A stretch of DNA of 64,000 bases from Macrostomum hystrix (Eukaryota; Animalia; Platyhelminthes): positions 806,001 through 870,000 of the forward strand of contig CATNEN010000015.1 of NCBI GenBank assembly GCA_950097015.1, given 5' to 3'. Position numbers and translations under genes: made by a program. The stretch's first letter is position 1; every line of letters begins with the position of its first letter. Positions 9,403 through 57,344 of this stretch are shown one piece after another. The notes under the pieces were generated by a model. The model was given only the letters and a program-made list of their open reading frames with translations. It ran no database searches and had not been told where the DNA came from.

Positions 9403-10152
9403 TCAGTTCTCCCGGATGCAGTAAGATTCCAGCCGTTGGAAATCCGACAGTTGGAGAATTATAGCGCTCATTCCATAGCAGTAGACTGAACCATTCAGGC
9501 TGTTCGCACTCGCTGAGGAGTACCCAATTCGCAGGCATTCAAACACAGACGAGTCCGCTTTAGCACCCAGGTCCATTGGGTAGGCCCTCTGAAACCGGCC
9601 ATAGAGGGTGCCGTTGAAGTAGTAGTGCTGGTAGGCGGTCCTGTTGTACGCGCAGCCGGCAGACAGCAGGGTTGGCTCCGTGGTTGCCGGCAAGAAGGTG
9701 TCTGATTCGGCCAGGTATTTGCCGTAGCCACCCTGAGTCCAGTGGGTGTAGCCGTACAGAAAATTGCTACGCTTGGCCAGCATGTTACCAGTCCTGTACG
9801 GGGAGCTGCAGGCCCTGAATACATGATAGAACTGGTACCTGAAATATGCGATTGCAGATTCTAGTTGCATTCCGCTGATCATAGAGTTCTAAAATGGTAT
9901 GAACTTACTCGCAATTCATTACGTGCCGCGCAAGCATATAGAATGAGTACACTTTTCCATAGTCCAAGTACTGCTGAAATCCAGGAGTCTCGGTACTCAG
10001 ATATGAGCTCGGACTTCCCTTGAGTACAGCGCCGTCGCTTCCCACAGATGCATCACTGGCAGTAAGGTAGTGCTGTCTCGGATTCACTTCGTTCACCAGG
10101 CCACTCTTCTTAAACCTGTAGAACAGCTTCATCTGCAGCTCAGTGAGCAGAT
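9403..10152 (-). CDS. LamG/concanavalin-A-like domain exons (10152-9909 and 9838-9403); probably exons 2-3 of a PAN-LamG secreted protein
   Basis: Acceptor ttttgtag before 10152 (phase 1). GTAAGT donor at 9908 and atttcag acceptor at 9839 give a 70-nt phase-2 intron joining ...RHVMNCE|YQFYHV.... Pattern LFYRF..SG.VNE...G.VLKGSPSSYL...YTHW...YYFNGTL...LRIG...NSLNGSV...LSDFQRL resembles Laminin_G_3/ConA-like domains. Confidence 0.7.
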
Positions 10153-10643
10153 CTACAAAAGGAGATTTAATTTTGTCTGCTGCAAGTTTATCGGTGCGCA
10201 GTAATTTCAGAAGCTTTTGTTAGCATATTCTACGCGTCAATAGCAGAGCCACTAGTGAGAGGCAACTCGTCTTCCCCTGTACCTCACTTCAAACCGCCTC
10301 TGCAACAGCAACAGCACTGATGAATGCGTCGGCTTCGCCAAAAGCACGCTTTGGTCAGAGTTTTTGCTGGACCATTGTGTGTTAGTAAGTTCGTTCCCCT
10401 ATAGTAGATAAAATTAATATGTGTGATGACTTCATATATCCCCAAATCAAAAGCAATTTTTCACCATGACATTGCACAAGACTCATTCTCTAACTCTCAG
10501 TGCTGCTTAAGTCTCTGATAAAGTGAGTTGTGTCCATAGATCTTATATATAGGTATAGGTTGCGTCACTCGTCCCGTAAGTAATTACGAGTAAGATCAAA
10601 GAACTTTACGTTTGCTAGGGTGTTATGTAACGACAACATACAA

Positions 10644-12301
10644 TCTCTCTCTAAATATACTAATTTTCACGTGTTGTTTGTCTGTCTGTGTGTGTGTGTG
10701 TGTGTCAGTTCGACATCTCCTACTAGAATACTGACAAGTCAACTTTGAAACTTATATGGGAAAATGGGAAATTTTCCGAGGAAGGCTATAGGCTATTTTA
10801 ATTCTGAAATTTCAAATTCTATGATCCTCAAAAAAGCAGAAAGGCTATTAAGTAGTATATAGTAGGCAAATGTCCTTCCCGCTGTGATGAAATTGGCCTC
10901 GGTTAAATGAGTTGCGTCAACATTTTGTGCCTATCTGTTTAGTGTATTTTCTCTCCAGTGGAGGGTTGGCAGTCGGTTTGAAAATGGGGCGGAGAGTTGG
11001 CCGTACGCACATTCTAACTGTCCCTGTGTATTGGCGGAGAGAGGGTGCCGCGAGTTATTTCTATTGAGGGGTCTGATTTGTTCAATATTGAAGTGCGTAC
11101 AATGGGCAGGGCAGAGTTGGCTGGGTTAAAATTCAATTGATAAAATTTGAATTGGGCCTCTCAGTGTAGGCGGAGAAGAATGTACTTACTAAAAAACTGG
11201 CTGCCCTTTGCGCTAAAGGCAATGAAATTTCAACTGTGAATTATTATTTTGCTTTTTAACATTTGAAAAGAACTGAGGCGATTTGAGATCAGGCAATGGG
11301 AGATCAGGCGATGGGAGATCAGGCAACGGGAGATGAGCCGATGGGAGATCAGGCGATGGGAGATCAGGCGATGGGAGATGTGGCGACGGGAGATGAGGCA
11401 ATGAGAAATGAGGCGATGGGAGATCAGGCGATAGGAGATGTGGCGACGGGAGATGAGGCGATGGGAGATCAGGCGATGGGAGATCAGGCGATAGGAGACG
11501 AGGCGATGGGAGATTAGGCGATGGGAGATCAGGCGATAGGAGATGAGGCGATAGGAGATGAGGCGATGGGAGATCAGGCGATGAGAGATTAGGCGATGGG
11601 AGATGAGGTGATGGGTGATCAGGTGATGGAAGATGAGGCGATGGGAGATGAGGCGATGGGAGATGAAGCGATGGGAGATGAGGCGATAGGAGATGAGGCG
11701 ATGGGAGATGAGGCGATGGGAGATCAGGCGATGGGAGATCAGGCGATGGGAGATCAGGCGATGGGAGATCAGGCGATGGGAGATGAGGCGATGGGAGATC
11801 AGGCGATGGGAGATCAGGCGATGGGAGATGTGGCGACGGGAGATGAGGCAATGAGAAATGAGGCGATGGGATCAGGCGATGGGAGATGAGGCGATGGGAG
11901 ATTAGGCGATGGGAGATCAGGCGATAGGAGATGAGGCGATGGGAGATGAGACGATGGGAGATGATGCGATGGGAGATCAGGCAATGGGAGATGAGGCGAT
12001 GGGAGATCAGGCGATGGGAGATCAGGCGATGGGAGATGAGGCAATGGGAGATGAGGCGATGGGAGATCAGGCAATAGGAGATGAGGCGATGGGAGATGAG
12101 ACGATGGGAGATGATGCGATGGGAGATTAGGCGATGGGAGATGAGGCGATGGGAGATAAGGCGATTGGAGATGAGGCGATGGGAGATGAGGCGATGGGAG
12201 ATCAGGCGATGGGAGATCAGGCGATAGGAGATGACGCGATGGGAGATCAGGCGATGGGAGTTCTCTCCCCTCAACCTCCTCCGGAGGAGGAGTTTAGCTC
12301 G
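10644..12301 (+). mobile_element. Non-autonomous Helitron-like family A, unit 1 (short form)
   Basis: Starts after A with TCTCTCTCTAAATATACTAA; (GTCT/GT)n microsatellite near the 5' end; ~630 bp unique body; 15-bp array ~11275-12260; palindrome CCTCCTCCGGAGGAGG at 12275-12290, then 7 nt and CTCG (12298-12301). Confidence 0.75.
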
Positions 12302-13864
12302 TAAATATACTAATTTTCACGTGTTGTTTGTCTGTGTGTGTGTCTGTGTGTGTGTGTGTCAGTTCGACATCTCCTCCTAGAATACTGGCAACTCAGCGTT
12401 GAAACTTATATGGGAAAATGGGAAATTTTCCGAGGAAGGCTATAGGCTATTTTAATTCTGAAATTTCAAATTCTATGATCCTCAAAAAAGCAGAAAGGCT
12501 ATTAAGTAGTATATAGTAGGCAAATGTCCTTCCCGCTGTGATGAAATTGGCCTCGGTTAAATGAGTTGCGTCAACATTTTGTGCCTATCTGTTCAGTGTA
12601 TTTTCTCTCCAGTGGAGGGTTGGCAGTCGGTTTGAAAATGGGGCGGAGAGTTGGCCGTACGCACATTCTAACTGTCCCTGTGTATTGGCGGAGAGAGGGT
12701 GCCGCGAGTTATTTCTATTGAGGGGTCTGATTTGTTCAATATTGAAGTGCGTACAATGGGCAGGGCAGAGTTGGCTGGGTTAAAATTCAATTGATAAAAT
12801 TATCGGGCCTCTCAGTGTAGGCGGAGAAGAATGTGCTTACTAAAAAACTGGCTGCCCTTTGCGCTAAAGGCAATGAAATTTCAACTGTGAATTATTATTT
12901 TGCTTTTTAACATTTGAAAAGAACTGAGGCGATTTGAGATCAGGCAATGGGAGATCAGGCAATGGGAGATCAGGCGATAGGAGATCAGGCGATAGGAGAT
13001 GAGGCGATAGGAGATCGGTCGATGGGAGATCAGGCGATGGGAGATCAGGCGACGGGAGATGAGCCGATGGGAGATGAGGCGATGGGAGATCAGGCGATGG
13101 GAAATCAGGCGATGGGAGATGAGGCGATGGGAGATCAGGCGATGGGAGATCAGGCGATGGGAGATGTGGCGATGGGAGATGAAGCGATGGGAGATGAAGC
13201 GATGGGAGATGAGGCGATGGGAGATCAGGCGATGGGAGATGAGGCGATGGGAGATTAGACGATGGGAGATGATGCGATGGGAGATTAGGCGATGGGAGAT
13301 GAGGTGATGGGTGATCAGGTGATGGGAGATGAGGCGATGGGAGATGAGGCGGTGGGAGATGAAGCGATGGGAGATGAGGCGATGGGAGATCAGGCGATGG
13401 GAGATGAGGCGATGGGAGATGAGGCGATGGGAGATGAGGCGATGGGAGATGAGGCGATGGGAGATTAGGCGATGGGAGATCAGGCGATGGGAGATGAGGC
13501 GATGGGAGATGAGGCGATGGGAGATCAGGCGATGGGAGATCAGGCGATAGGAGATGACGCGATGGGAGATCAGGCGATGGGAGATGATGCGATGGGAGAT
13601 TAGGCGATGGGAGATGAGGTGATGGGTGATCAGGTGATGGGAGATGAGGCGATGGGAGATGAGGCGATGGGAGATGAAGCGATGGGAGATGAGGCGATGG
13701 GAGATCAGGCGATGGGAGATGAGGCGATGGGAGATGAGGCGATGGGAGATGAAGCGATGGGAGATGAGGCGATGGGAGATGAGGCGATGGGAGATGAGGC
13801 GATGGGAGATGAGGCGATGGGAGTTCTCTCCCCTCAACCTCCTCCGGAGGAGGAGTTTAGCTCG
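12302..13864 (+). mobile_element. Helitron-like family A, unit 2 (short form)
   Basis: Same body as unit 1; starts TAAATATAC (no TC); 15-bp array ~12925-13823; same palindrome + CTCG end. Confidence 0.75.
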
Positions 13865-16507
13865 TAAATATACTAATTTTCACGTGTTGTTTGTCTGTGT
13901 GTGTGTCTGTGTGTGTGTGTGTGTGTCAGTTCGACATCTCCTCCTAGAATACTGGCAACTCAGCGTTGAAACTTATATGGGAAAATGGGAAATTTTCCGA
14001 GGAAGGCTATAGGCTATTTTAATTTTGAAATTTCAAATTCTATCATCCTCAAAAAAGCAGAAAGGCTATTAAGTAGTATATAGTAGGCAAATGTCCTTCC
14101 CGCTGTGATGAAATTGGCCTCGGTTAAATGAGTTGCGTCAACATTTTGTGCCTATCTGTTTAGTGTATTTTCTCTCCAGTGGAGGGTTGGCAGTCGGTTT
14201 GAAAAAAAATGGGGCGGAGAGGTGGCCGTACGCACATTCTAACTGCCTCTGTGTATTGGCGGAGAGAGGGTGCCGTTAGTCAGTTCTATTGAGGGGTCTG
14301 ATTTGTTCAATATTGAAGTGCGTACAATGGGCAGGGCAGAGTTGGCTGGGTTAAAATTCAATTTATAAAATTTGCGGGCCTCTCAGTGTAGGCGGAGAAG
14401 AATGTGCTTACTAAACTGGCTGCCTTTTGCAGAAATTTCAACTGAGAATTATTAATTTGCTTTTTTAAGATTTGTGGATAAAATTTGTACTGCTGGAGAG
14501 AACTTGAAGTTCTAAATCCAGAGATATAAATTTCATTGCTGAATTCCGAAAATTGGGGATGCCAAGGGCAAATAAAGTTTTTATACTTTTGCAATGCTTT
14601 CAGCTGAGTGTACAGTGTCTCGGCGAGATTGCTAAGGAGAGAGAATTCGCCACAATACAGTTTCACACATTCCTATTCTCGAAGGCGGACTGTTGAATTT
14701 TATTTATTGAAATTCGCACCTCTGACTGAGCGGGGCCCGGAGAACTCGCTGTTGTCAATATTAATGGCTCGGACTTCACCTGTTTTAACGGGTGGGGTTT
14801 AATTTAAAGTTGATGGAGTTCGCGCGATATGATTTCTAGCCCCTCAATCTTATCCGAAAGTTGTCGTCTATTTTAATTCTGAAGATTCTGGGCATGGTAG
14901 CTAAAGAAAAATTGGTCAATTTTGAATTGTTTTCAACAGTTTAGTCGGACAAAAGGCGGTTTACGCACATTGCTACTTTCAGACATCATTGGGTGAGGAG
15001 TTTTTGGTTAGATGAGGCGATGGGAGATGTGGCGACGGAAGATGAGGCAATGGGAGTTTAGGCGATGAGAGATGAGGCGATGGGAGATGAGGCGATGGGA
15101 GATGAGGCGATGGGAGATGAGGCGATGAGAGATGAGGCGATGAAAGATGACGCGATGGGAGATCAGGCGACGGGAGATGAGGGGATAGGAGATCAGGCGA
15201 TGGGAGATGAGGCGATGGGAGATCAGGCGACGGGAGATGAGGGGATGGGAGATCAGGCGATGGGAGATTAGGCGACGGGAGATGAGGGGATGGGAGATCA
15301 GGCGATGGGAGATCAGGCGATGGTAGATGAGGCGATGAAAGATGAGGCGATAGGAGATGAGGCGATGGGAGATTATGCGATGGGAGATGAGGCGATGGGA
15401 GATGAGGCGATGGGAGATGAGGCGATGGGAGATCAGGCGATGGGAGATGTGGCGACTGGAGATGAGGTGATGGGAGATCAGGCGATAGGAGATGACGCGA
15501 TGGGAGATGAGGCGATGGGAGATGAGACGATGGGAGATCAGGCAATGGGAGATCAGGCGATGGGAGATTAGGCGATGGGAGATTAGGCGATGGGAGATGA
15601 GGCGATGGGAGATCAGGCGATTGGAGATCAGGCGATTGGAGATGAGGCGATGGGAGATCAGCCGATGGGAGATCAGCCGATGGGACATTAGGCGATGGGA
15701 GATCAGGCAATGGGAGATCAGGCGGGGGAAGATCAGGCGATGGGAGATCAGGCGATGGGAGATCAGGCGATGGGAGATCGGGCGATGGGAGATGAGGCGA
15801 TGGGAGATCAGGCGATGGGAGATGAGGGGATGGGAGATCAGGCGATAGGAGATGAGGCGATGGGAGATGAGGTGATGGGAGATGAGACGGTGGGAGATCA
15901 GGCGGGGGAAGATCAGGCGATGGGAGATCAGGCGATGGGAGATGAGGCGATGGGAGATTAGGCGATGGGAGATCAGGCGATAGGAGATGAGGCGATGGGA
16001 GATGAGACGATGGGAGATGATGCGATGGGAGATTAGGCGATGGGAGATGAGGTGATGGGTGATCAGGTGATGGGAGATGAGGCGATGGGAGATGAGGCGA
16101 TGGGAGATGAAGCGATGGGAGATGAGGCGATGGGAGATCAGGCGATGGGAGATCAGGCGATGGGAGATCAGGCGATGGGAGATGAGGGGATGGGAGATCA
16201 GGCGACGGGAGATGAGGCGATGGGAGATGAGGCGATGGGAGATGAGGCGATGGGAGATGAGGCGATGGGAGATGAGGCGATGGGAGATGAGGCGATGGGA
16301 GATTAGGCGATGGGAGATCAGGCGATGGGAGATTAGGCGATGGGAGATGAGGCGATGGGAGATGAGGCGATGGGAGATGAGGCGATGGGAGATGAGGCGA
16401 TGGGAGATTAGGCGATGGGAGATCAGGCGATAGGAGATGACGCGATGGGAGATCAGGCGATGGGAGTTCTCTCCTCTCAACCTCCTCCGGAGGAGGAGTT
16501 TAGCTCG
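13865..16507 (+). mobile_element. Helitron-like family A, unit 3 (long form)
   Basis: Same termini; extra ~580-bp block ~14428-15009; 15-bp array ~15010-16466. Confidence 0.75.
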
Positions 16508-17897
16508 TAAATATACTAATTTTCACGTGTTGTTTGTCTGTCTGTGTGTGTGTGTGTCAGTTCGACATCTCCTCCTAGAATACTGGCAACTCAGCGTTGA
16601 AACTTATATGGGAAAATGGGAAATTTTCCGAGGAAGGCTATAGGCTATTTTAATTCTGAAATTTCAAATTCTATGATCCTCAAAAAAGCAGAAAGGCTAT
16701 TAAGTAGTATATAGTAGGCAAATGTCCTTCCCGCTTAGACGAAATTGGCTTTGGTTAAATGAGTTGCGTCAACATTTTCTGCCTATCTGTTCAGTGTATT
16801 TTCTCTCCAGTGGAGGGTTGGCAGTCGGTTTGAAAATGGGGCGGAGAGGAGGCCGTACGCACATTCTAACTGTCCCTGTGTATTGGCGGAGAGAGGGTGC
16901 CGCGAGTTATTTCTATTGAGGGGTCTGATTTGTTCAATATTGAAGTGCGTACAATGGGCAGGGCAGAGTTGGCTGGGTTAAAATTCAATTGATAAAATTT
17001 GCGGGCCTCTCAGTGTAGGCGGAGAAGAATGTACTTACTAAAAAACTGGCTGCCCTTTGCGCTAAAGGCAATGAAATTTCAACTGTGAATTATTATTTTG
17101 CTTTTTAACATTTGAAAAGAACTGAGGCGATTTGAGATCAGGCAATGGGAGATCAGGCAATGGGAGATCAGGCGATGGGAGATCAGGCGATCGGAGATGA
17201 GGCGATGGGAGATCAGGCGATGGGAGATCAGGCGATGGGAGATCAGGCAACGGGAGATGAGCCGATGGGAGATCAGGCGATGGGAGATCAGGCGATGGGA
17301 GATCAGGCGATGGGAGATGAGGCGATGGGAGATCAGGCGATGGGAGATCAGGCGATGGGAGATGAGGCAATGGGAGATGAGGCGACGGGAGATGAGGCGA
17401 TGGGAGATCAGGCGATGGGAGATGAGGCGATGGGAGATGAGGCGATGGGAGATGAGGGGATGGGAGATCAGGCGATGGGAGATGAGGCGATGGAAGATGA
17501 GGCGATGGGAGATGAGGGGATGGGAGATGAGGCGATGGGAGATGTGGCGACGGGAGATGAGGCAATGGGAGATGAGGCGATGGGAGATGCGGTGATCGGT
17601 GATCAGGTGATGGGAGATGAGGCGATGGGAGATGAGGCGATGGGAGATGAGGCGATGGGAGATCAGGCGATGGGAGATGAGGCGATGGGAGATGAGGCGA
17701 TGGGAGATGAGGCGATGGAAGATGAGGCGATGGGAGATCAGGCGATGGAAGATCAGGCGATAGGAGATGAGGCGATGGGAGATGAGGCGATGGGAGATGA
17801 GACGGTGGGAGATCAGGCGGGGGAAGATCAGGCGATTGGAGATCAGGCGATCGGAGTTCTCTCCCCTCAACCTCCTCCGGAGGAGGAGTTTAGCTCG
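16508..17897 (+). mobile_element. Helitron-like family A, unit 4 (short form)
   Basis: Same termini and body; 15-bp array ~17123-17856. Confidence 0.75.
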
Positions 17898-20135
17898 TAA
17901 ATATACTAATTTTCACGTGTTGTTTGTCTGTCTGTGTGTGTGTGTGTCAGTTCGACATCTCCTCCTAGAATACTGGCAACTCAGCGTTGAAACTTATATG
18001 GGAAAATGGGAAATTTTCCGAGGAAGGCTATAGGCTATTTTAATTCTGAAATTTCAAATTCTATGATCCTCAAAAAAGCAGAAAGGCTATTAAGTAGTAT
18101 ATAGTAGGCAAATGTCCTTCCCGCTGTGATGAAATTGGCCTCGGTTAAATGAGTTGCGTCAACATTTTGTGCCTATCTGTTCAGTGTATTTTCTCTCCAG
18201 TGGAGGGTTGGCAGTCGGTTTGAAAATGGGGCGGAGAGGAGGCCGTACGCACATTCTAACTGCCTCTGTGTATTGGCGGAGAGAGGGTGCCGTTAGTCAG
18301 TTCTATTGAGGGGTCTGATTTGTTCAATATTGAAGTGCGTTTAATGGGCAGGGCAGAGTTGGCTGGGTTGAAAATAAATTTTAAAATTTGCGGGCCTCTC
18401 AGTGTAGGCGGAGAAGAATGTGCTTACTAAACTGGCTGCCCTTTGCGCTAAAGGCAATGAAATTTCAACTGTGAATTATTATTTTGCTTTTTAACATTTG
18501 AAAAGAACTTAGGCGATTTGAGATCAGGCAATGCGAGATCAGGCAATGGGAGATCAGGCGATGGGAGATCAGGCAATGGGAGATCAGCCGATGGGAGATT
18601 AGGCGATGGGAGATGAGGCGATGGGAGATCAGCCGATGGGAGATCAGCCGATGGGAGATTAGGCGATGGGAGATGAGGCGATGGGAGATCAGGCAATGGG
18701 AGATCAGGCGATGGGAGATTAGGCGATGGGAGATTAGGCGATGGGAGATGAGGCGATTGGAGATGAGGCGATGGGAGATGAGGCGATGGGAGATTAGGCG
18801 ATGGGAGATCAGGCGATGGGAGATCAGGCAATGGGAGATCAGGCGATGGGAGATTAGGCGATGGGAGATTAGGCGATGGGAGATCAGGCGATGGGAGATG
18901 AGGCGATGGGAGATTAGGCGATGGGAGATGAGGCGATGGGAGATGAGGCGATGGGAGATGAGGCGATGGGAGATGAGGCGATGGGAGATTAGGCGATGGG
19001 AGATCAGGCGATGGGAGATCAGGCAATGGGAGATCAGGCGATGGGAGATTAGGCGATGGGAGATTAGGCGATGGGAGATGAGGCGATGGGAGATTAGGCG
19101 ATGGGAGATGAGGCGATGGGAGATGAGGCGATGGGAGATGAGGCGATGGGAGATGAGGCGATGGGAGATTAGGCGATGGGAGATCAGGCGATGGGAGATC
19201 AGGCAATGGGAGATCAGGCGATGGGAGATTAGGCGATGGGAGATTAGGCGATGGGAGATGAGGCGATGGGAGATTAGGCGATGGGAGATCAGGCGATTGG
19301 AGATGAGGCGATGGGAGATCAGCCGATGGGAGATCAGCCGATGGGAGATTAGGTGATGGGAGATGAGGCGATGGGAGATCAGGCAATGGGAGATCAGGCG
19401 ATGGGAGATGAGGCGATGGGAAATCAGGCGATGGCGATGGGAGATGTGGCGATGGGAGATGTGGCGATGTGAGATTAGGCGATGGGAGATTAGGCGATGG
19501 GAGATGAGGCGATGGGAGATTAGGCGATGGGAGATGAGGCGATGGGAGATGAGGCGATGGGAGATGAGGCGATGGGAAATCAGGCGATGGCGATGGGAGA
19601 TGAGGCGATGGGAGATGAGACGATGGGAGATGATGCGATGGGAGATGAGGCGATGGGAGATGAGGCGATGGGAGATGAGGCGATGGGAGATCAGGCGGGG
19701 GAAGATCAGGCGATAGGAGATGAGGCGATGGGAGATGAGGCGATGGGAGATCAGGCGACGGGAGATGAGGCGATGGGAGATCAGGCGATGGGAGATGAGG
19801 CGATGGGAGATCAGGCGATGGGAGATTAGGCGATGGGAGATGAGGCGATGGGAGATGAGGCAATGGGAGATGAGGCGATGGGAGATGAGGCGATGGGAGA
19901 TCAGGCGATGGGAGATGTGGCGACGGGAGATGAGGCAATGGGATATTAGGCGATGGGAGATCAGGTAATGGGAGATCTGGCGATGGGAGATCAGGCGATA
20001 GGAGATGAGGCGATGGGAGATGAGGCGATGGGAGATGAGACGGTGGGAGATCAGGCGGGGGAAGATCAGGCGATTGGAGATCAGGCGATGGCAGTTCTCT
20101 CCCCTTAACCTCCTCCGGAGGAGGAGTTTAGCTCG
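17898..20135 (+). mobile_element. Helitron-like family A, unit 5 (short form)
   Basis: Same termini and body; 15-bp array ~18510-20094. Confidence 0.75.
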
Positions 20136-20160
20136 TCTAAATATACTAAAATTCACGTGT

Positions 20161-20195
<35 letters not shown>

Positions 20196-22590
20196 TGGTT
20201 ATCTCCTCCTAGAATACTGACAAGTCAACTTTGAAACTTATATGGGAAAATGGGAAATTTTCCTGGTCAGGCTATAGGCTATTTTAATTCTGAAATTTCG
20301 AATTCTATGATCCTCAAAAAAGCAGAAAGGCTATTAAGTAGTATATAGTAGGCAAATGTCCTTCCCGCTGTGATGAAATTGGCCTCGGTTAAATGAGTTG
20401 CGTCAACATTTTGTGCCTATCTGTTTAGTGTATTTTCTCTCCAGTGGAGGGTTGGCAGTCGGTTTGAAAATGGGGCAGAGAGGAGGCCGTACGCACATTC
20501 TAACTGTCCCTGTGTATTGGCGGAGAGAGGGTGCCGTTAGTCAGTTCTATTGAGGGGTCTGATTTGTTCAATATTGAAGTGCGTACAATGGGCAGGGCAG
20601 AGTTGGCTGGGTTAAAATTCAATTGATAAAATTGCGGGCCTCTCAGTGTAGGCGGAGAAGAATGTGCTTACTAAACTGGCTGCCTTTTGCAGAAATTTCA
20701 ACTGAGAATTATTATTTTGCTTTTTTAAGATTTGTGGATAAAATTTGTACTGCTGGAGAGAACTTGAAGTTCTAAATCCAGAGATATAAATTTCATTGCT
20801 GAATTCCGAAAATTGGGGATGCCAAGGGCAAATAAAGTTTTTATACTTTTGCAATGCTTTCAGCTGAGTGTACAGTGTCTCCGCTAGATTGCTAAGGAGA
20901 GAGAATTCGCCACAATACAGTTTCACACATTCCTATTCTCGAAGGCGGGCTGTTGAATTTTATTTATTGAAATTCGCACCTCTGACTGAGCGGGGCCCGG
21001 AGAACTGGCTGTCGTCAATATTAATGGCTCGGACTTCATCTGTTTTAACGGGTGGGGTTTAATTTAAAGTTGATGGAGTTCGCGCGATATGATTTCTAGC
21101 CCCTCAATCTTATCCGAAAGTTGTCGTCTATTTTAATTCTGAAGATTCTGGGCATGGTAGCTAAAGAAAAATTGGTCAATTTTGAATTGTTTTCAACAGT
21201 TTAGTCGGACAAAAGGCGGTTTACAAACATTGCTACTTCCAGACATCATTGGGTGAGGAGTTTTTGGTTAGTCAGTTTGGACACTGAGGTCTGAACTCTC
21301 TGAATTGAATATAAAATGACTGTACATTCACGCAAGATCGCACGGGGTGATGAGGCGATGGGAGATCAGGCAATGGGAGATCAGGCGATGGGAGATTAGG
21401 CGATGGGAGATCAGGCGATGGGAGATGAGGGGATGGGAGTTTAGGCGATGGGAGATGAGGCGATGGGAGATGAGGCGATGGGAGATGAGGCGATAGGAGA
21501 TGAGGCGATAGGAGATGAGGCGATGGGAGATGTGGCGACGGGAGATGAGGCGATGGGAGATGAGGCGATGGGAGATGAGGCGATAGGAGATGAGGCGATT
21601 GTAGATGTGGCGACGGAAAATGAGGCAATGGGAGTTTAGGCGATGGGAGATGTGACGACGGGAGATGAGGTGATGGGTGATCAGGTGAAGGGAGATGAGG
21701 CGATGGGAGATGAGGCGATGGGAGATGAGGCGACGGGAGATGAGGGGATGGGAGATCAGGCGATGGGAGATGAGGCGACGGGAGATGAGGGGATGGGAGA
21801 TCAGGCGATGGGAGATGAGGCAATGGAAGATGAGGCGATGGGAGATGAGGGGATGGGAGATGAGGCGATGGGAGATGAGGCGATGGGAGATGAGGCGATG
21901 GGAGATGAGGGGATGGGAGATCAGGCGATGGGAGATGAGGCGATGGGAGATGAGGCGATGGGAGATGAGGGGATGGGAGATGAGGCGATGGGAGATGAGG
22001 CGATGGGAGATGAGGCGATGGGAGATGAGGTGATGGGAGATGAGGCGACGGGAGATGAGGGGATGGGTGATCAGGCGATGGGAGATGAGGCGATGGAAGA
22101 TGAGGCAATGGAAGATGAGGCGATGGGAGATGAGGGGATGGGAGATGAGGCGATGGGAGATGAGGCGATGGGAGATGAGGCGATGGGAGATGAGGGGATG
22201 GGAGATCAGGCGATGGGAGATGAGGCGATGGGAGATGAGGCGATGGGAGATCAGGCGATGGGAGATCAGGCGATAGGAGATGAGGCGATGGGAGATGAGG
22301 CGATGGGAGATGTGGCGACGGGAGATGAGGCAATGGGAGATCAGGCGATAGGAGATCAGGCGATGGGAGATGAGGCGATTGGAGATGAGACGGTGGGAGA
22401 TGAGGCGATGGGAGATGTGGCGACGGGAGATGAGGCAATGGGAGATCAGGCGATAGGAGATCAGGCGATGGGAGATGAGGCGATTGGAGATGAGACGGTG
22501 GGAGATCAGGCGGGGGAAGATCAGGCGATTGGAGATCAGGCGATGGGAGTTCTCTCCCCTCAACCTCCTCCGGAGGAGGAGTTTAGCTCG
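20136..22590 (+). mobile_element. Helitron-like family A, unit 6 (long form; intact TC 5' end)
   Basis: Junction reads CTCG|TCTAAATATAC; extra block ~20687-21343; 15-bp array ~21344-22549; palindrome + CTCG end. Confidence 0.75.
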
Positions 22591-22613
22591 TAAATATACT
22601 AAAATTCACGTGT

Positions 22614-22648
<35 letters not shown>

Positions 22649-24662
22649 TGGTTATCTCCTCCTAGAATACTGACAAGTCAACTTTGAAACTTATATGGGA
22701 AAATGGGAAATTTTCCTGGTCAGGCTATAGGCTATTTTAATTCTGAAATTTCAAATTCTATGATCCTCAAAAAAGCAGAAAGGCTATTAAGTAGTATATA
22801 GTAGGCTAATGTCCTTCCCGCTGTGATGAAATTGGCCTCGGTTAAATGAGTTGCGTCAACATTTTGTGCCTATCTGTTTAGTGTATTTTCTCTCCAGTGG
22901 AGGGTTGGCAGTCGGTTTTAAAATGGGGCGGAGAGTTGGCCGTACGCACATTCTAACTGCCCCTGTGTATTGGCGGAGAGAGGGTGCCGCGAGTTATTGC
23001 CGCTATTGAGGGGTCTGATTTGTTCAATATTGAAGTGCGTATAATGGGCAGGGCAGAGTTGGCTGGGTTAAAATTCAATTGATAAAATTTGCGGGCCTCT
23101 CTGTGTAGGCGGAGAAGAATGTACTTACTAAAAAACTGGCTGCCCTTTGCGCTAAAGGCAATGAAATTTCAACTGTGAATTATTATTTTGCTTTTTAACA
23201 TTTGAAAAGAACTGAGGCGATTTGAGATCAGGCAATGGGAGATCAGGCAATGGGAGATCAGGCGATGGGAGATCAGGCGATGGGAGATGTGGCGACGGGA
23301 GATGAGGCAATGAGAAATGAGGCGATGGGAGATCAGGCGATGGGAGATCAGGCGACGGGAGATGAGCCGATGGGAGATCAGGCGATGGGAGATCAGGCGA
23401 TGGGAGATCAGGCGATGGGAGATGAGGCGATGGGAGATCAGGCGATGGGAGATCAGGCGATGGGAGATGTGGCGACGGGAGATGAGGCAATGAGAAATGA
23501 GGCGATGGGAGATCAGGCGATTGGAGATGTGGCGACGGGAGATGAGGCGATGGGAGATCAGGCGATGGGAGATGTGGCGACGGGAGATGAGGCAATGAGA
23601 AATGAGGCGATGGGAGATCAGGCGATAGGAGATGTGGCGACGGGAGATGAGGCGATGGGAGATCAGGCGATGGGAGATGAGGCGATGGGAGATGAGGCGA
23701 TGGGAGATTAGGCGATGGGAGATGAGGCGATAGGAGATGAGGCGATGGGAGATGAGACGATGGGAGATGATGCGATGGGAGATTAGGCGACGGGAGATGA
23801 GGCAATGGGAGATTAGGCGATGGGAGATCAGGCAATGGGAGATCTGGCGATGGGAGATCAGGCAATGGGAGATCTGGCGATGGGAGATCAGGCGATAGGA
23901 GATGAGGCGATGGGAGATGAGGCGATGGGAGATGAGACGGTGTGAGATCAGGCGGGGGAAGATCAGGCGACGGGAGATGAGGCGATGGGAGATGAGGCGA
24001 TGGGAGATCAGGCGATGGGAGATGAGGCGATGGGAGATGAGGCGATGGGAGATGAGGCGATGGGAGATGAGGCGATGGGAGATTAGGCGATGGGAGATCA
24101 GGCGATAGGAGATGACGCGATGGGAGATCAGGCGATGGGAGATCAGGCGATAGGAGATGACGCGATGGGAGATCAGGCGATGGGAGATCAGGCGATGGTA
24201 GATGAGGCGATGAAAGATGAGGCGATGGGAGATCAGGCGATAGGAGATGAGGGGATGGGAGATCAGGCGATGGGAGATCAGGCGATGGGAGATCAGGTGA
24301 TGGGAGATCAGGCGATGGGAGATCAGGCGACGGGAGATGAGGGGATGGGAGATCAGGCGATGGGAGATCAGGTGATGGGAGATCAGGCGATGGGAGATGT
24401 GGCGACGGGAGATGAGGTGATGGGTGATCAGGTGAAGGGAGATGAGGCGATGGGAGATGAGGCGATGGGAGATTAGGCGATGGGAGATGAGGCAATAGGA
24501 GATGAGGCGATGGGACATCAGGCGATAGGAGATGAGGCGATGGGAGATGAGGCGATGGGAGATGAGACGGTGGGAGATCAGGCGGGGGAAGATCAGGCGA
24601 TTGGAGATCAGGCGATGGGAGTTTTCTCCCCTCAACCTCCTCCGGAGGAGGAGTTTAGCTCG
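22591..24662 (+). mobile_element. Helitron-like family A, unit 7 (short form)
   Basis: Starts TAAATATAC; 15-bp array ~23213-24621; palindrome at 24636-24651; CTCG at 24659-24662. Confidence 0.75.
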
Positions 24663-24722
24663 TAATATACTAAAAATGAAAATCTTTCTAATATACTAAA
24701 AATGAAAATCTTGCTTGTCTTA
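24663..24722 (+). repeat. Two truncated tandem copies of the family-B Helitron 5' terminus
   Basis: 24663-24686 TAATATACTAAAAATGAAAATCTT (TC missing) and 24687-24722 TCTAATATACTAAAAATGAAAATCTTGCTTGTCTTA precede the full-length 5' end at 24723. Confidence 0.8.
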
Positions 24723-25318
24723 TCTAATATACTAAAAATGAAAATCTTGCTTGCTTGTTCGTAATTGATTTTCTCCCGAACGGCTCAACCGATTTTCACC
24801 ATTTCTTCACCAAAAGATGCCAAATATGGGGACAATTATACACGTATTTTTATTAAGCTTAACTTTATTGCTAAAGGGATTAAATATTCGAAAAACAAGA
24901 TTTTTCAAAGGTCAAACATCTTGGCCTATTGAGAATTTTACTCACTGCCACTGAATTAGAATTGCATCGTCAAATTGCGCAACAACCCCTAGCTGATTGA
25001 ATTTGAAGCCTGCACTCTGGAGACAAATTGGAAATAAATGTACACAACCAACCGCGAGACTGAGTGTACTCTATTTTCTTACTTCATTGTACAAAGCCAG
25101 AACTTTGAGAATTCATTTTATAAGGCTGATTTTTGCACCCACTAACCAACAGTCGGAATAGCCGATGTGTAGGCACTAGGAATAAGGTTAGGCTAGGCTA
25201 GGGTTCGATTCTGCACTGCGTCAAATCATTTAGACTAATTTTCAGCCAGTAGTGATTGAAGACTATTTTAATTTATTTTTTTCATTTCGTAAATAAAATA
25301 TCATAAATCATAGCACAC

Positions 25319-49300: not shown

Positions 49301-52300
49301 CAAGCGTCTGAATCATGGCTAAACCAGAGTCTGAATCATGGCTAAACCAGAGTTTGAATCATAGCTAAACCAGAGTCTGAATCATGGCTAAACCAGAGTC
49401 TGAATCATGGCTAAACCAGAGTCTGAATCATGGCTAAACCAGAGTCTGAATCATGGCTAAACCAGAGTCTGAATCATGGCTAAACCAGAGTCTGAATCAT
49501 GGCTAAACCAGAGTCTGAATCATGGCTACACCAGAGTCTGAATCATGGCTAAACCAAAGTCTGAATCATTGCTACACCAGAGTCTGAATCATGGCTCATA
49601 GCTAAACCAGAGTCTGAATCATGGCTAAACCAGAGTCTGAATCATGGCTACACCAGAGTCTGAATCATGGCTAAACCAGAGTTTAAATCAAAGCTAAACA
49701 AGCGTCTGAATCATGGCAAAACCAGAGTTTCAATCATGGCTAAACCAGAGACTAAATCATGGCTACACCAGGGTTTGAATCATGGCAAAACCAGAGTTTG
49801 AATCATGGCTAAACCAGAGTCTGAATCATGGCTAAACCAGAGTCTGAATCATGGCTAAACCAGAGTCTGAATCATGGCTAAACCAGAGTCTGAATCATGG
49901 CTAAACCAGAGTCTGAATCATGGCTAAACCAGAGTCAGAATCATGGCTAAACCAGAGTCTGAATCATGGCTAAACCAGAGTCTGAATCATGGCTAAACCA
50001 GAGTCTGGATCATGGCTAAACCAGCGTCTGAATCATGGCTAAACCAGAGTCTGAATCAAGGCTAAACCAGAGTCTGAATCATGGCTAAACCAGAGTCTGA
50101 ATCATGGCTACACCAGAGTCTGAATCATGGCTACACCAGAGTCTGAATCATGGCTACACCAGAGTCTGAATCATGGCTAAACCAGAGTTTGAATCATAGC
50201 TAAACCAGAGTCTGAATCATGGCTAAACCAGAGTCTGAATCATTGCTACACCAGAGTCTGAATCATGGCTCATAGCTAAACCAGAGTCTGAATCATGGCT
50301 AAACCAGAGTCTGAATCATGGCTACACCAGAGTCTGAATCATGGCTAAACCAGAGTTTAAATCAAAGCTAAACAAGCGTCTGAATCATGGCAAAACCAGA
50401 GTTTGAATCATAGCTAAACCAGAGTCTGAATCATGGCTAAACCAGAGTCTGAATCATGGCTAAACCAGAGTCTGAATCATGGCTAAACCAGAGTCTGAAT
50501 CATGGCTAAACCAGAGTCTGAATCATGGCTAAACCAGAGTCTGAATCATGGCTACACCAGAGTCTGAATCATGGCTAAACCAAAGTCTGAATCATTGCTA
50601 CACCAGAGTCTGAATCATGGCTCATAGCTAAACCAGAGTCTGAATCATGGCTAAACCAGAGTCTGAATCATGGCTACACCAGAGTCTGAATCATGGCTAA
50701 ACCAGAGTTTGAATCATAGCTAAACCAGAGTCTGAATCATGGCTAAACCAGAGTCTGAATCATTGCTACACCAGAGTCTGAATCATGGCTCATAGCTAAA
50801 CCAGAGTCTGAATCATGGCTAAACCAGAGTCTGAATCATGGCTACACCAGAGTCTGAATCATGGCTAAACCAGAGTTTAAATCAAAGCTAAACAAGCGTC
50901 TGAATCATGGCAAAACCAGAGTTTGAATCATAGCTAAACCAGAGTCTGAATCATGGCTAAACCAGAGTCTGAATCATGGCTAAACCAGAGTCTGAATCAT
51001 GGCTAAACCAGAGTCTGAATCATGGCTAAACCAGAGTCTGAATCATGGCTAAACCAGAGTCTGAATCATGGCTAAACCAAAGTCTGAATCATTGCTACAC
51101 CAGAGTCTGAATCATGGCTCATAGCTAAACCAGAGTCTGAATCATGGCTAAACCAGAGTCTGAATCATGGCTACACCAGAGTCTGAATCATGGCTAAACC
51201 AGAGTTTAAATCAAAGCTAAACAAGCGTCTGAATCATGGCAAAACCAGAGTTTCAATCATGGCTAAACCAGAGACTAAATCATGGCTACACCAGGGTTTG
51301 AATCATGGCAAAACCAGAGTTTGAATCATGGCTAAACCAGAGTCTGAATCATGGCTAAACCAGAGTCTGAATCATGGCTAAACCAGAGTCTGAATCATGG
51401 CTAAACCAGAGTCTGAATCATGGCTAAACCAGAGTCTGAATCATGGCTAAACCAGAGTCAGAATCATGGCTAAACCAGAGTCTGAATCATGGCTAAACCA
51501 GAGTCTGAATCATGGCTAAACCAGAGTCTGGATCATGGCTAAACCAGCGTCTGAATCATGGCTAAACCAGAGTCTGAATCAAGGCTAAACCAGAGTCTGA
51601 ATCATGGCTAAACCAGAGTCTGAATCATGGCTACACCAGAGTCTGAATCATGGCTACACCAGAGTCTGAATCATGGCTACACCAGAGTCTGAATCATGGC
51701 TAAACCAGAGTTTGAATCATAGCTAAACCAGAGTCTGAATCATGGCTAAACCAGAGTCTGAATCATGGCTAAACCAGAGTCTGAATCATGGCTAAACCAG
51801 AGTCTGAATCATGGCTAAACCAGAGTCTGAATCATGGCTAAACCAGAGTCTGAATCATGGCTACACCAGAGTCTGAATCATGGCTAAACCAAAGTCTGAA
51901 TCATTGCTACACCAGAGTCTGAATCATGGCTCATAGCTAAACCAGAGTCTGAATCATGGCTAAACCAGAGTCTGAATCATGGCTACACCAGAGTCTGAAT
52001 CATGGCTAAACCAGAGTTTGAATCATAGCTAAACCAGAGTCTGAATCATGGCTAAACCAGAGTCTGAATCATTGCTACACCAGAGTCTGAATCATGGCTC
52101 ATAGCTAAACCAGAGTCTGAATCATGGCTAAACCAGAGTCTGAATCATGGCTACACCAGAGTCTGAATCATGGCTAAACCAGAGTTTAAATCAAAGCTAA
52201 ACAAGCGTCTGAATCATGGCAAAACCAGAGTTTGAATCATAGCTAAACCAGAGTCTGAATCATGGCTAAACCAGAGTCTGAATCATGGCTAAACCAGAGT

Positions 52301-55300
52301 CTGAATCATGGCTAAACCAGAGTCTGAATCATGGCTAAACCAAAGTCTGAATCATTGCTACACCAGAGTCTGAATCATGGCTCATAGCTAAACCAGAGTC
52401 TGAATCATGGCTAAACCAGAGTCTGAATCATGGCTACACCAGAGTCTGAATCATGGCTAAACCAGAGTTTAAATCAAAGCTAAACAAGCGTCTGAATCAT
52501 GGCAAAACCAGAGTTTCAATCATGGCTAAACCAGAGACTAAATCATGGCTACACCAGGGTTTGAATCATGGCAAAACCAGAGTTTTAATCATGGCTAAAC
52601 AAGAGTTTGAATGATGGCTAAACCAGAGTTTGAATCATGGCTAAACAAGCGTCTGAATCATGGCTAAACCAGAGTCTGAATCATGGCTAAACCAGAGTTT
52701 GAATCATAGCTAAACCAGAGTCTGAATCATGGCTAAACCAGAGTCTGAATCATGGCTAAACCAGAGTCTGAATCATGGCTAAACCAGAGTCTGAATCATG
52801 GCTAAACCAGAGTCTGAATCATGGCTAAACCAGAGTCTGAATCATGGCTAAACCAGAGTCTGAATCATGGCTACACCAGAGTCTGAATCATGGCTAAACC
52901 AAAGTCTGAATCATTGCTACACCAGAGTCTGAATCATGGCTCATAGCTAAACCAGAGTCTGAATCATGGCTAAACCAGAGTCTGAATCATGGCTACACCA
53001 GAGTCTGAATCATGGCTAAACCAGAGTTTAAATCAAAGCTAAACAAGCGTCTGAATCATGGCAAAACCAGAGTTTCAATCATGGCTAAACCAGAGACTAA
53101 ATCATGGCTACACCAGGGTTTGAATCATGGCAAAACCAGAGTTTGAATCATGGCTAAACAAGAGTTTGAATCATGGCTAAACCAGAGTTTGAATCATGGC
53201 TAAACAAGCGTCTGAATCATGGCTAAACCAGAGTCTGAATCATGGCTAAACCAGAGTCTGAATCATGGCTCAACCAGAGTCTGGATCATGGCTAAACCAG
53301 AGTCTGAATCATGGCTAAACCAGAGTCTGAATCATGGCTAAACCAGAGTCTGAATCATGGCTAAACCAGAGTCTGAATCATGGCTAAACCAGAGTCTGAA
53401 TCATGGCTAAACCAGAGTCTGGATCATGGCTAAACCAGAGTCTGAATCATGGCTAAACCAGAGTCTGAATTATGGCTAAACCAGAGTCTGAATCATTGCT
53501 AAACCAGAGTCTGAATCATGGCTACACCAGAGTCTGAATCATGGCTACACCAGAGTCTGAATCATGGCTAAACCAAAGTCTGAATCATTGCTACACCAGA
53601 GTCTGAATCATGGCTCATAGCTAAACCAGAGTCTGAATCATGGCTAAACCAGAGTCTGAATCATGGCTACACCAGAGTCTGAATCATGGCTAAACCAGAG
53701 TTTGAATCATAGCTAAACCAGAGTCTGAATCATGGCTAAACCAGAGTCTGAATCATTGCTACACCAGAGTCTGAATCATGGCTCATAGCTAAACCAGAGT
53801 CTGAATCATGGCTAAACCAGAGTCTGAATCATGGCTACACCAGAGTCTGAATCATGGCTAAACCAGAGTTTAAATCAAAGCTAAACAAGCGTCTGAATCA
53901 TGGCAAAACCAGAGTTTGAATCATAGCTAAACCAGAGTCTGAATCATGGCTAAACCAGAGTCTGAATCATGGCTAAACCAGAGTCTGAATCATGGCTAAA
54001 CCAGAGTCTGAATCATGGCTAAACCAGAGTCTGAATCATGGCTACACCAGAGTCTGAATCATGGCTACACCAGAGTCTGAATCATGGCTAAACCAAAGTC
54101 TGAATCATGGCTCATAGCTAAACCAGAGTCTGAATCATGGCTAAACCAGAGTCTGAATCATGGCTACACCAGAGTCTGAATCATGGCTAAACCAGAGTTT
54201 AAATCAAAGCTAAACAAGCGTCTGAATCATGGCAAAACCAGAGTTTCAATCATGGCTAAACCAGAGACTAAATCATGGCTACACCAGGGTTTGAATCATG
54301 GCAAAACCAGAGTTTTAATCATGGCTAAACAAGAGTTTGAATGATGGCTAAACCAGAGTTTGAATCATGGCTAAACAAGCGTCTGAATCATGGCTAAACC
54401 AGAGTCTGAATCATGGCTAAACCAGAGTTTGAATCATAGCTAAACCAGAGTCTGAATCATGGCTAAACCAGAGTCTGAATCATGGCTAAACCAGAGTCTG
54501 AATCATGGCTAAACCAGAGTCTGAATCATGGCTAAACCAGAGTCTGAATCATGGCTAAACCAGAGTCTGAATCATGGCTACACCAGAGTCTGAATCATGG
54601 CTAAACCAAAGTCTGAATCATTGCTACACCAGAGTCTGAATCATGGCTCATAGCTAAACCAGAGTCTGAATCATGGCTAAACCAGAGTCTGAATCATGGC
54701 TACACCAGAGTCTGAATCATGGCTAAACCAGAGTTTAAATCAAAGCTAAACAAGCGTCTGAATCATGGCAAAACCAGAGTTTCAATCATGGCTAAACCAG
54801 AGACTAAATCATGGCTACACCAGGGTTTGAATCATGGCAAAACCAGAGTTTGAATCATGGCTAAACAAGAGTTTGAATCATGGCTAAACCAGAGTTTGAA
54901 TCATGGCTAAACAAGCGTCTGAATCATGGCTAAACCAGAGTCTGAATCATGGCTAAACCAGAGTCTGAATCATGGCTAAACCAGAGTCTGGATCATGGCT
55001 AAACCAGAGTCTGAATCATGGCTAAACCAGAGTCTGAATCATGGCTAAACCAGAGTCTGAATCATGGCTAAACCAGAGTCTGAATCATGGCTAAACCAGA
55101 GTCTGAATCATGGCTAAACCAGAGTCTGGATCATGGCTAAACCAGAGTCTGAATCATGGCTAAACCAGAGTCTGAATTATGGCTAAACCAGAGTCTGAAT
55201 CATGGCTAAACCAGAGTCTGAATCATGGCTACACCAGAGTCTGAATCATGGCTACACCAGAGTCTGAATCATGGCTACACCAGAGTCTGAATCATGGCTA

Positions 55301-56075
55301 CACCAGAGTCTGAATCATGGCTAAACCAGAGTTTGAATCATAGCTAAACCAGAGTCTGAATCATGACTAAACCAGAGTCTGAATCATTGCTACACCAGAG
55401 TCTGAATCATGGCTCATAGCTAAACCAGAGTCTGAATCATGGCTAAACCAGAGTCTGAATCATGGCTACACCAGAGTCTGAATCATGGCTAAACCAGAGG
55501 TTAAATCAAAGCTAAACAAGCGTCTGAATCATGGCAAAACCAGAGTTTGAATCATAGCTAAACCAGAGTCTGAATCATGGCTAAACCAGAGTCTGAATCA
55601 TGGCTAAACCAGAGTCTGAATCATGGCTAAACCAGAGTCTGAATCATGGCTAAACCAGAGTCTGAATCATGGCTAAACCAGAGTCTGAATCATGGCTACA
55701 CCAGAGTCTGAATCATGGCTAAACCAAAGTCTGAATCATTGCTACACCAGAGTCTGAATCATGGCTCATAGCTAAACCAGAGTCTGAATCATGGCTAAAC
55801 CAGAGTCTGAATCATGGCTACACCAGAGTCTGAATCATGGCTAAACCAGAGTTTAAATCAAAGCTAAACAAGCGTCTGAATCATGGCAAAACCAGAGTTT
55901 CAATCATGGCTAAACCAGAGACTAAATCATGGCTACACCAGGGTTTGAATCATGGCAAAACCAGAGTTTGAATCATGGCTAAACCAGCGTTTGAATCATG
56001 GCCAACCAGCGTCTGAATCATGGCTAAACCAGAGTTTGAATCATGGCAAAATCAGAGTTTGAATCATAGCTAAAT
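25319..56075 (+). repeat. 23-bp satellite array (~30.7 kb, roughly 1,300 monomers), consensus CATGGCTAAACCAGAGTCTGAAT, with higher-order repeats
   Basis: 23-bp periodicity (e.g. TGAATC at 25381 and 25404); recurrent variant monomers in fixed order; a 30-bp variant (GGCT-CATAGCT-AAACC); degenerate monomers at both edges. Confidence 0.98.
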
Positions 56076-56078
56076 CGG

Positions 56079-56875
56079 AACTGGGGGATAATCGTCAACT
56101 GTGGGATAATTGTAAACTGGGGAATCATCATCAAATGGGGGATCATGGTCAACTGGGGATCATTGTCAAATGGGGATCATCATCATTTGGGAGTCATCAT
56201 CAAAGGGGGGATCATGGTCAACTGCGAGATCATTGTCAACTGGGTGATCATCATCAACTGGGGGATCATTGTCAACTAGGGGGATCATTGTCAACTGGGG
56301 TATCATTATCAACTGGGGGATCATCATCAACTGGGTGATCATTGTCAACTGGGGGATCATTGTCATCTGAGGGATCATTGTCAACTGGGGGATCATTGTC
56401 AACTGTGAGATCATTGTCAACTGGGTGATCATTGTCAACTGGGGGATCATTGTCAACTGGGGGATCATTGTCAACTGTGGGATCATTGTCAACTGTGAGA
56501 TCATTGTCAACTGGGGGATCATTGTCAACTGGGGGATCATTGTCAACTGGGTGATCATTGTCAACTGGGGGATCATCATCAACTGGGGGATCATTGTCAA
56601 CTGTGGGATCATTGTCAACTGGGGGATCATTGTCAACAAGGGGATCATTGTCAACTGGGGGATCATTGTCAACTGGGGATCATTGTCAACTGGGGGTTCA
56701 TTGTCAACTGGGGGATCATTGTCAACTGGGGGATCATCATCAACTGGGGGATCATTGTCAACTGGGGATCATTGTCAACTGGGGGTTCATTTTCAACTGG
56801 GGGATCATTGTCAACTGGGGGATCATCATCAACTGGGGGATCATTGTCAACTGGGGGATCATTGTCAACTGGGGG
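56079..56875 (+). repeat. 18-bp minisatellite, consensus CTGGGGGATCATTGTCAA (some 17-bp variants)
   Basis: Periodicity read directly; gives the WGIIVN / QLTMIP / GGSLST repeat ORFs. Confidence 0.95.
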
Positions 56876-56947
56876 TTTATTTTAGCTTTAAAAAGCTGTA
56901 AATTCAGCTGCTAAACAGTATATACAAGACGAATTAAAAATATTTCT

Positions 56948-56976
56948 GCTCCCCGAAGGGGGGCAAAACATGCTAG
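56948..56976 (+). other. Helitron 3' terminal signature: hairpin + CTAG
   Basis: GCTCCCC GAA GGGGGGC stem-loop (one T-G pair), spacer AAAACATG, CTAG, followed by T. Matches the canonical Helitron 3' end (hairpin about 10 nt upstream of CTRR). Confidence 0.75.
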
Positions 56977-56987
56977 TATATACTAAA

Positions 56988-57344
56988 TTACATACTGCTG
57001 TCTGAAAGACCCAATCGAGTGTACACGAAAGCCACACAAGGTCCGTCAGTCCATTGCGTTGCCGCTGAACGAGCGTCTCCTAGGTAGCACAATCGTTTGA
57101 CAATGTCCATGTAGAAAGCATTGCAGCTAGGTATGGCGCTGCACACTCCAGCGCATTGCAGCAGGCTGCTTCTCTGATACTGCTTAGTGTTGGCTGTTGG
57201 ACACTGCTGAGACCTACGGAAATTGTGCATCTCTGCTGCTACCGTACACGAGCTCTCTGTAATTACGGCGGCTGGCCATACCAAGAGAACCCAGTACTTC
57301 AGTGCCGTTCCGACTTTTGAGTTCAACTGGGTAGGCATTCTCAT
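56988..57344 (-). CDS. Signal-peptide-like + PAN/apple domain exon; probably exon 1 (57344-56996) of the PAN-LamG gene, or a stand-alone 118-aa protein
   Basis: Hydrophobic N-terminal stretch (ALKYWVLLVWPAAVI); PAN-type cysteine motif SSLLQCAGVCSAIPSCNAFYMDIVKRLCYL; phase-1 GTATGT donor at 56995, just before the in-frame TAA at 56990-56988. Confidence 0.72.
   Translation of the reverse strand: MRMPTQLNSKVGTALKYWVLLVWPAAVITESSCTVAAEMHNFRRSQQCPTANTKQYQRSSLLQCAGVCSAIPSCNAFYMDIVKRLCYLGDARSAATQWTDGPCVAFVYTRLGLSDSSM

Follow-up and report, generated by a model that had tools for sequence, protein, structure and literature searches.

The DNA analysed here is a stretch of 64,000 nucleotides (nt) from the genome of Macrostomum hystrix (GenBank assembly GCA_950097015.1, contig CATNEN010000015.1, positions 806,001 to 870,000 of the forward strand), which is called the window; all coordinates refer to it. 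A 46.3-kb block (10644-56976) contains seven units of a repeat family A, followed by one unit of a family B that is 32 kb long. All units are arranged head to tail on the plus strand. The first part of the block has a strong skew of G over C, and the second part is uniform satellite. Judged from their termini and internal repeats, the eight units appear to be non-autonomous, satellite-carrying Helitrons of the canonical type that lie within one intron; no RepHel gene was found in the window. The 5' TC is missing at almost every place where a 3' end meets a start. The features of the locus are listed in Table 1.

Table 1. Features of the Helitron array and its right flank (positions are those of the window).
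Feature	Position	Strand	Remarks
(TC)4	10644-10651	+	between flank ...CATACAA and first A unit; identical in contig of run X1
A1	10652-12301	+	head of ~625 nt with (GT)n tract, 15-bp minisatellite, hairpin CCTCCTCCGGAGGAGG, end CTCG
A2	12302-13864	+	CTCG directly 5', without TC
A3	13865-16507	+	long-type head (~570 nt extra), without TC
A4	16508-17897	+	without TC; variant cluster otherwise seen in a related organism
A5	17898-20135	+	without TC
Sole TC retained at an internal joint	20136-20137	+	CTCG(TC)TAAAT, i.e. CTCG/TC/TAAAT
A6	20138-22590	+	long-type head; first ~170 nt as in A7 save one base
A7	22591-24662	+	without TC
Two family-B mini-heads	24663-24724	+	26 nt (first 26 nt of B, 1 mismatch) and 36 nt (first 36 nt of B, 4 mismatches); each ends with TC
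Family-B element	24725-56976	+	head of ~600 nt, 23-bp and 18-bp satellites, hairpin, CTAG
Family-B 23-bp satellite	25320-56074		~1315 copies
Family-B 18-bp satellite	56079-56875		~44 copies
Family-B hairpin	56947-56965		
Family-B CTAG end	56973-56976		
Right flank TATATACTAAATTACATAC	56977-56995	+	Helitron-start-like without TC; minus strand GTATGTAATTTAGTATATA, the predicted first 19 nt of an intron
PAN-like coding exon of host gene	56996-57344	-	open reading frame (ORF), weak Pfam PAN matches, homologues

A family-A unit begins with TAAATATACTAA, which is followed by a (GT)n/(GTCT)n tract, a head of ~600 nt, a 15-bp minisatellite of 0.7-1.6 kb, the hairpin CCTCCTCCGGAGGAGG and the end AGTTTAGCTCG. 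The heads of A3 and A6 carry an extra segment of ~570 nt (14440-15010 and 20700-21345, ~98% identical) that does not occur in the other five units, and A6 contains another 78 nt ahead of its minisatellite. Family B begins with TAATATACTAAAAATG and terminates with a hairpin followed by CATGCTAG at 56976. Its 5' end comprises three nested starts (24663, 24689 and 24725). The mini-heads in front of the full start may stem from abortive or prematurely ended events, or from template switching at TC.

The 3' end CTCG of family A was found in seven of seven units and breaks the CTRR rule; the CTAG of family B fits it. The family-A hairpin has a stem of 7-8 bp that ends 9 nt short of the 3' terminus, or 7 nt short of it when the perfect 8-bp palindrome is included, and the stem of the family-B hairpin comprises 8 bp and ends 11 nt before the 3' end. 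Both families thus possess the GC-rich hairpin located ~10-15 nt before the 3' end that characterizes canonical Helitrons. The outer flanks ...CATACAA/ and /TATATAC... (slashes mark joints) do not contain a repeat, which corresponds to an A/T insertion without target duplication for the array as a whole. In neither family did the initial 40 nt have an inverted match of at least 8 nt in the final 150 nt. Because starts and ends share no inverted repeat, the units are most plausibly classified as canonical-type Helitrons rather than as Helentrons. An assignment to Helentron/Helitron2 was rejected for this lack of subterminal inverted repeats and for the outer flanks, which are A and T and not T^T.

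The target of Helitrons is conventionally stated to be A^T within AT-rich DNA, and rolling-circle concatemers are the usual explanation for head-to-tail arrays. In the window, TAAATATACTAA occurs seven times on the plus strand (10652, 12302, 13865, 16508, 17898, 20138, 22591), compared to 0.16 occurrences expected by chance. The starts at 12302, 13865, 16508, 17898 and 22591 are preceded by ...GAGTTTAGCTCG, which gives five A/A joints of the TC-less form CTCG/TAAAT. Only the A/A joint in front of 20138 contains a TC, and here the preceding letters are ...GCTCG plus TC. At the outer left end, ...CATACAA plus TCTCTCTC precedes 10652, that is, (TC)4 followed by TAAAT. The A7/B joint at 24663 reads CTCG/TAATATAC and is TC-less as well. 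Finally, the CTAG of family B directly abuts TATATACTAAAT, which is once more a start-like motif without TC. An earlier note on this DNA, made from the letters alone, had described the five TC-less A/A junctions and the single one with TC, the A-B junction without TC and three surplus TCs at the outer left end; all of these were found where the note had placed them.

Altogether, eight of the nine joints between a 3' end and a start are TC-less, including six of the seven joints that follow an A unit, and the starts involved are of the three types TAAA-, TAA- and TA-TATACTAA. The 5' TC is present at the free left end (10644-10651) and at 20136, and absent at six internal starts. Since the TC-less joints comprise three start types, at least three independent events are needed and one deletion does not suffice. 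The starts of A6 and A7 are nearly identical over ~170 nt (one difference), and only A6 is preceded by TC. The presence of TC is therefore not simply inherited with the head. Special secondary structure was looked for across the joints, and none was found.

Long repetitive arrays are difficult to assemble, and the joints might in principle be an artefact. A 7,054-nt contig derived from the reads of run X1 matches positions 9900-10669, including (TC)4, with zero differences. The TC-less joint was represented by 60 nt of sequence, so chosen that the joint falls within each 31-letter word. Both sampled words were present in eight runs, all from the same organism and belonging to two studies; some of these runs may be the source of the assembly. 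Because these words occur in eight runs from two studies, an assembly error at the TC-less joint is excluded. The formation of the array as a single rolling-circle concatemer of one element was rejected too: the units are 90-92.6% alike and carry subfamily variants in blocks, and TC is missing from all but one of the seven joints that follow an A unit. With joint words in independent runs, a left end confirmed by a contig, and units that differ by 5-9% in blocks common to dispersed copies, an artefact or such a concatemer is hardly credible. Runs X7-X13 (possibly RNA; queried for 9900-11270) yielded contigs with A-head sequence and the TC-less joint words. According to these contigs, the array or other family-A copies may be transcribed.

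The history of the units was deduced from their mutual similarity. Long matches between units have identities of 90-92.6%, and no pair exceeds 92.6% over long stretches. Long near-identical duplicates were not found inside the array by unit-to-unit comparison. In an alignment of the seven A heads, the differences come blockwise and the resulting groupings conflict. Within the first 150 nt, A6 and A7 are set apart from the rest; further on, A3, A5 and A6 are distinguished from A1, A2, A4 and A7. Private clusters of changes exist in A4 and in A5. A2 and A5 are identical for ~290 nt and differ in 10 of 110 positions further on, and the divergence of 5-9% between units can therefore be taken to reflect subfamily mixing and not age.

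The same variants are found outside the array. In run X1, the depth of the A head is several hundred times that of the single-copy flank, a ratio that does not give a copy number. The A2-5 type accounts for ~63% of the summed contig depth, the A6/7 type for ~10% and the A3/5/6 type for 17-32%. The block variants of the A units are thus common throughout a family of roughly a few hundred copies. The private cluster of A4 (16750-16800, corresponding to 10884-10927 of A1) comprises six changes, five of which are identical to the variant in the sole matching contig of a related organism. This suggests that the cluster marks an old sublineage of family A that different species have in common. As far as can be judged from the alignments, the mosaic favours separate arrivals and argues against both one concatemer and a recent local amplification of one mutated joint. 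The earlier note had regarded the origin of all TC-less junctions from one 2-bp deletion amplified in place as incompatible with its proposal; a recent origin of this kind does not fit units that represent different family lineages. An old amplification followed by gene conversion could also have generated the mosaic of the A units.

A related explanation is that a few accidental 2-bp losses at canonical CTCG/TC joints were spread by unequal crossing-over, gene conversion or multi-unit transposition. A TC-less start could then not initiate, CTCG might terminate poorly, and the TCs at the left end would result from microsatellite slippage. The tail and the first ~30 nt of the head are nearly invariant, which makes a common descent of the A/A joints possible. 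The microsatellite layouts of A2/A3 and of A4/A5 are alike, the TC-less joint is found in many runs as would be an inherited structure, and the number of TCs does not match the number of elements. The downstream parts of A2/A3 and A4/A5 deviate from the pattern predicted by unequal crossing-over, and the evidence for local duplication is thin. Moreover, at least three separate losses (A/A, A/B and B/native flank) would be required, the near-identical starts of A6 and A7 differ in TC, the array lacks long near-identical duplicates, slippage is unlikely to have produced four TCs from one, and the start-like native flank is left unexplained. We consider accidental loss rather unlikely. A higher-order repeat with period 3 (A1-3, A4-6, A7) was rejected because only A3/A6 and a few columns fit.

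The ORF of the exon next to the right flank of family B has homologues down to E 1e-15, which align up to residue 111-112 of its 118 residues. On the minus strand, the flank (56977-56995) reads GTATGTAATTTAGTATATA and provides a good splice-donor context (GTATGT). Because this context adjoins an ORF with PAN matches and homologues, the right flank is, on sequence grounds, native intron DNA beside a conserved exon. The array would accordingly lie antisense in an intron of the host gene, ~19 nt from the donor, with the splice site as predicted. The reading of the DNA to the right of family B as the relic of a Helitron body was rejected; no convincing 3' end was seen there, and the flank is made up of the conserved exon and the predicted first 19 nt of the intron. 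On both strands, the 35,202 non-array positions contain the strict motif T-A{1,3}-TATACTAA a single time, precisely at the 3' junction of B. The native flank resembles a 5' end that has been decapitated, which is what a cut by the enzyme directly 5' of the motif would lead one to expect.

From the observed junction sequences, lineage mosaic and native-flank motif we infer a cut position, an order of events and a role of the transposase. The stack would have been built by repeated separate insertions at the extreme 5' end of whichever element was already resident. In the target, the transposase would cut directly 5' to the initial T of the core T-A(1-3)-TATACTAA, irrespective of the preceding base. 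The first arrival would have used the native intron site A^TA-TATACTAAAT in a canonical A^T event, and later arrivals the same motif in the residents, namely TC^TAA-TATAC in B and TC^TAAA-TATAC in A. In each event, the 3' end of the newcomer would be joined to a start stripped of its TC, and the TC of the resident would be left beside the newcomer's own. The joint CTCG/TC/TAAAT could be due to an insertion one T further left or at an internal start that was already TC-less. To reconcile five TCs with eight elements, one would have to add that the TC run has contracted, that unequal crossing-over has occurred to some extent, or that newcomers were derived from TC-less internal copies. If the N^T positions of (TC)n-TA were chosen freely, the last position would not be expected in almost every event, which supports a fixed cut.

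We tentatively prefer this insertion immediately 5' of the T-A(n)-TATACTAA core, with the resident's TC remaining on the left side, and hold it to be a serious possibility rather than a probable one. More doubtful is the wider proposal that the lineage picks its targets by sequence, such that its transposase recognizes the T-A(n)-TATACTAA core in single-stranded DNA and cuts 5' of it, both in native DNA and in residents of several families.

Several observations weigh against insertion at the core. The bookkeeping leaves 4+1 TCs for eight elements, as the earlier note had already remarked in finding the surplus TCs too few. A1, which would be the youngest unit, carries several private changes. 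The TCs ahead of the B starts at 24689 and 24725 are ambiguous: positions 35-36 of family B are TC and positions 25-26 are GC, and as the TCs of the mini-heads align to these internal positions, they do not count as instances of a separate 5' TC. The ordinary start of the family may itself be TCTC; many plant Helitrons begin with TCTCTA. The strict motif test at the right flank was defined after inspection of the data, and a looser alignment of the flank with the start gave only p ~0.007. CT is absent from the alternative target dinucleotides reported for Helraiser (PMC4778049). The evidence comes from one locus and cannot prove that elements land inside resident starts. The stack-building insertion at TC^TA claimed in the earlier note consequently stands in part: the TC-less joints are real, they recur with three start types and the native flank resembles a decapitated start, whereas a cut at this point would be one explanation beside a later loss of TC, and the spare TCs may or may not have been left by insertions. 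The A/B joint of this locus lacks TC, as a crossing between families would demand.

The distribution of TC would also result if the transposase removed or skipped it wherever a 3' end meets a 5' end. The TC-less joints would then be processing products and not marks of a target, formed either by cuts at G^TC and C^TA with subsequent resealing or by imprecise joints of circles or concatemers that integrate. In agreement with this, TC is missing exactly where a 3' end precedes a start and is present at the free left end, and about half of the Helraiser circles recovered from cells have aberrant junctions (PMC5876387). Processing accounts neither for the spare TCs on the left nor for the motif in the native flank, where a TC need never have existed, and units of different lineages do not derive from one concatemer. 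We think it unlikely.

Copies outside the array bear on a further possibility, namely that TC is not part of the moving unit. The element would then start with TA... and insert 3' of a target TC; CTCG/TA would represent an exact joint, and (TC)4 would belong to the native DNA. The 3' ends of six of the seven A units (five A/A joints and A7/B) and the joint of B with the native flank need no extra assumption in this case, and the bookkeeping problem disappears. In run X7, a family-A copy from another locus reads ...AACGG/TCTC/TAAATATAC; it carries two TCs and is flanked by a base other than A, which also speaks for insertion at the core. Among the matches listed, whose alignments stop at the (GT)n tract (10670-10714), this is the one readable 5' end from other loci. 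Both free ends, (TC)4 here and TCTC in X7, have more than one TC, which a target TC does not explain, and CTCG/TC/TAAAT at 20136 would be anomalous. Near position 2071 on the minus strand (2050-2075), GTTCA/TC-CAATATACTAAAACTCAC resembles the A6 start TC-TAAATATACTAAAATTCAC over ~21 nt. This solo-looking, related start has the canonical left junction A/TC-CAATATACTAAAAC. In addition, active Helitrons carry TC in their circles (PMC4778049, PMC13286980). That TC is a target is improbable. The similarity of the start near 2071 ends after ~24 nt and a 3' end, which was sought, was not found; this sequence possibly represents a solo start from a related family, either decayed or truncated.

Other searches yielded little. 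Exact-pattern scans of metagenome contigs and of prokaryote genome contigs did not return a match to other copies. A protein search with the junction-spanning ORF gave low-complexity CVCV matches only, a search with the flanking 159-aa ORF (9406-9882, minus strand) gave none, and an exact-protein look-up of both flanking ORFs found no record. A literature text search for the literal terminus sequences led to unrelated matches only. To the right of the host exon, a 21-bp satellite (61834-62769, ~45 copies, 90% matches) without Helitron ends beside it occupies an apparent intron between GC-rich coding stretches at ~61550-61800 and 62890-63240.

If sequence-guided insertion were true, Helitron starts would serve as homing sites, and satellite-bearing elements would grow into long composite arrays. 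The transposase would read more than a target dinucleotide and could use C^T, and stacks would record their own history as leftover TCs. A simple route would lead from dispersed satellite-carrying elements to composite arrays of tens of kb inside genes; the outcome here is a 46-kb insert 19 nt from the predicted splice donor. If one of the other explanations holds, the locus is a Helitron array of the ordinary kind, with a minor peculiarity at its junctions.

A comparable principle is known from the IS200/IS605 family. For IS608, the target TTAC equals the cleavage site of the left end, and the element is always located 3' of TTAC. IS608 likewise employs an HUH enzyme, its target mirrors its own left-end recognition sequence, and new copies land next to old ones. 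It differs in being prokaryotic and in using a single-tyrosine enzyme without helicase; target recognition by base pairing has been demonstrated for IS608 and is not known for this Helitron lineage.

Satellite-carrying non-autonomous elements have been described as DINE-1/Helentrons of Drosophila (PMC4067079) and as Helentron carriers of satellite-like repeats in oysters (PMC7492417). Like the units described here, they are short, do not code for protein and consist mostly of an internal tandem repeat with elastic length. They possess subterminal inverted repeats and insert at T^T; neither applies to the present array, which is flanked by A and T.

With Helraiser (PMC4778049, PMC5876387) and the active wheat family Xuan-Feng (PMC13286980), the array shares TC at its free 5' terminus, a hairpin that lies ~10 nt from the 3' terminus, outer flanks of the A...T type, the lack of a duplication and an AT-rich 3' side. 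Helraiser prefers A^T, with 46 of 1,751 insertions at other dinucleotides, and AT-rich DNA is favoured 3' of the insertion (PMC4778049). For Xuan-Feng, exact junctions and the A^T preference hold (PMC13286980). In contrast, family A ends with CTCG and not with CTRR, the internal targets would be C^T, and the joints are not exact joints of right to left terminal sequence. By analogy, the published work on both systems makes homing to starts plausible and does not document such behaviour.

Tandem Helitron arrays are already known from bats (Pritham and Feschotte 2007, as cited in PMC2267711) and from plants. Homing to resident 5' ends, as put forward in the earlier note, is not new in itself. 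In the maize r1 region, head-to-tail Helitrons have been attributed to consecutive insertion at the A^T that is recreated by the first T of the resident (Du et al. 2008, PMC2267711). As in maize, different Helitrons lie in one orientation, each 3' end abuts the next start, and re-use of the 5' site of the resident is the suggested cause. Consecutive insertion with an exact joint of 3' end and TC was rejected for the present array, since only the joint at 20136 fits and the others are shifted by two bases. Compared to maize r1, the joint is located two bases further in, the TC of the resident is lost, TCs gather on the left, and up to eight units are stacked. What would be new here is the two-base shift of the target, the leftover TCs, the use across families and a native target that mimics a start.

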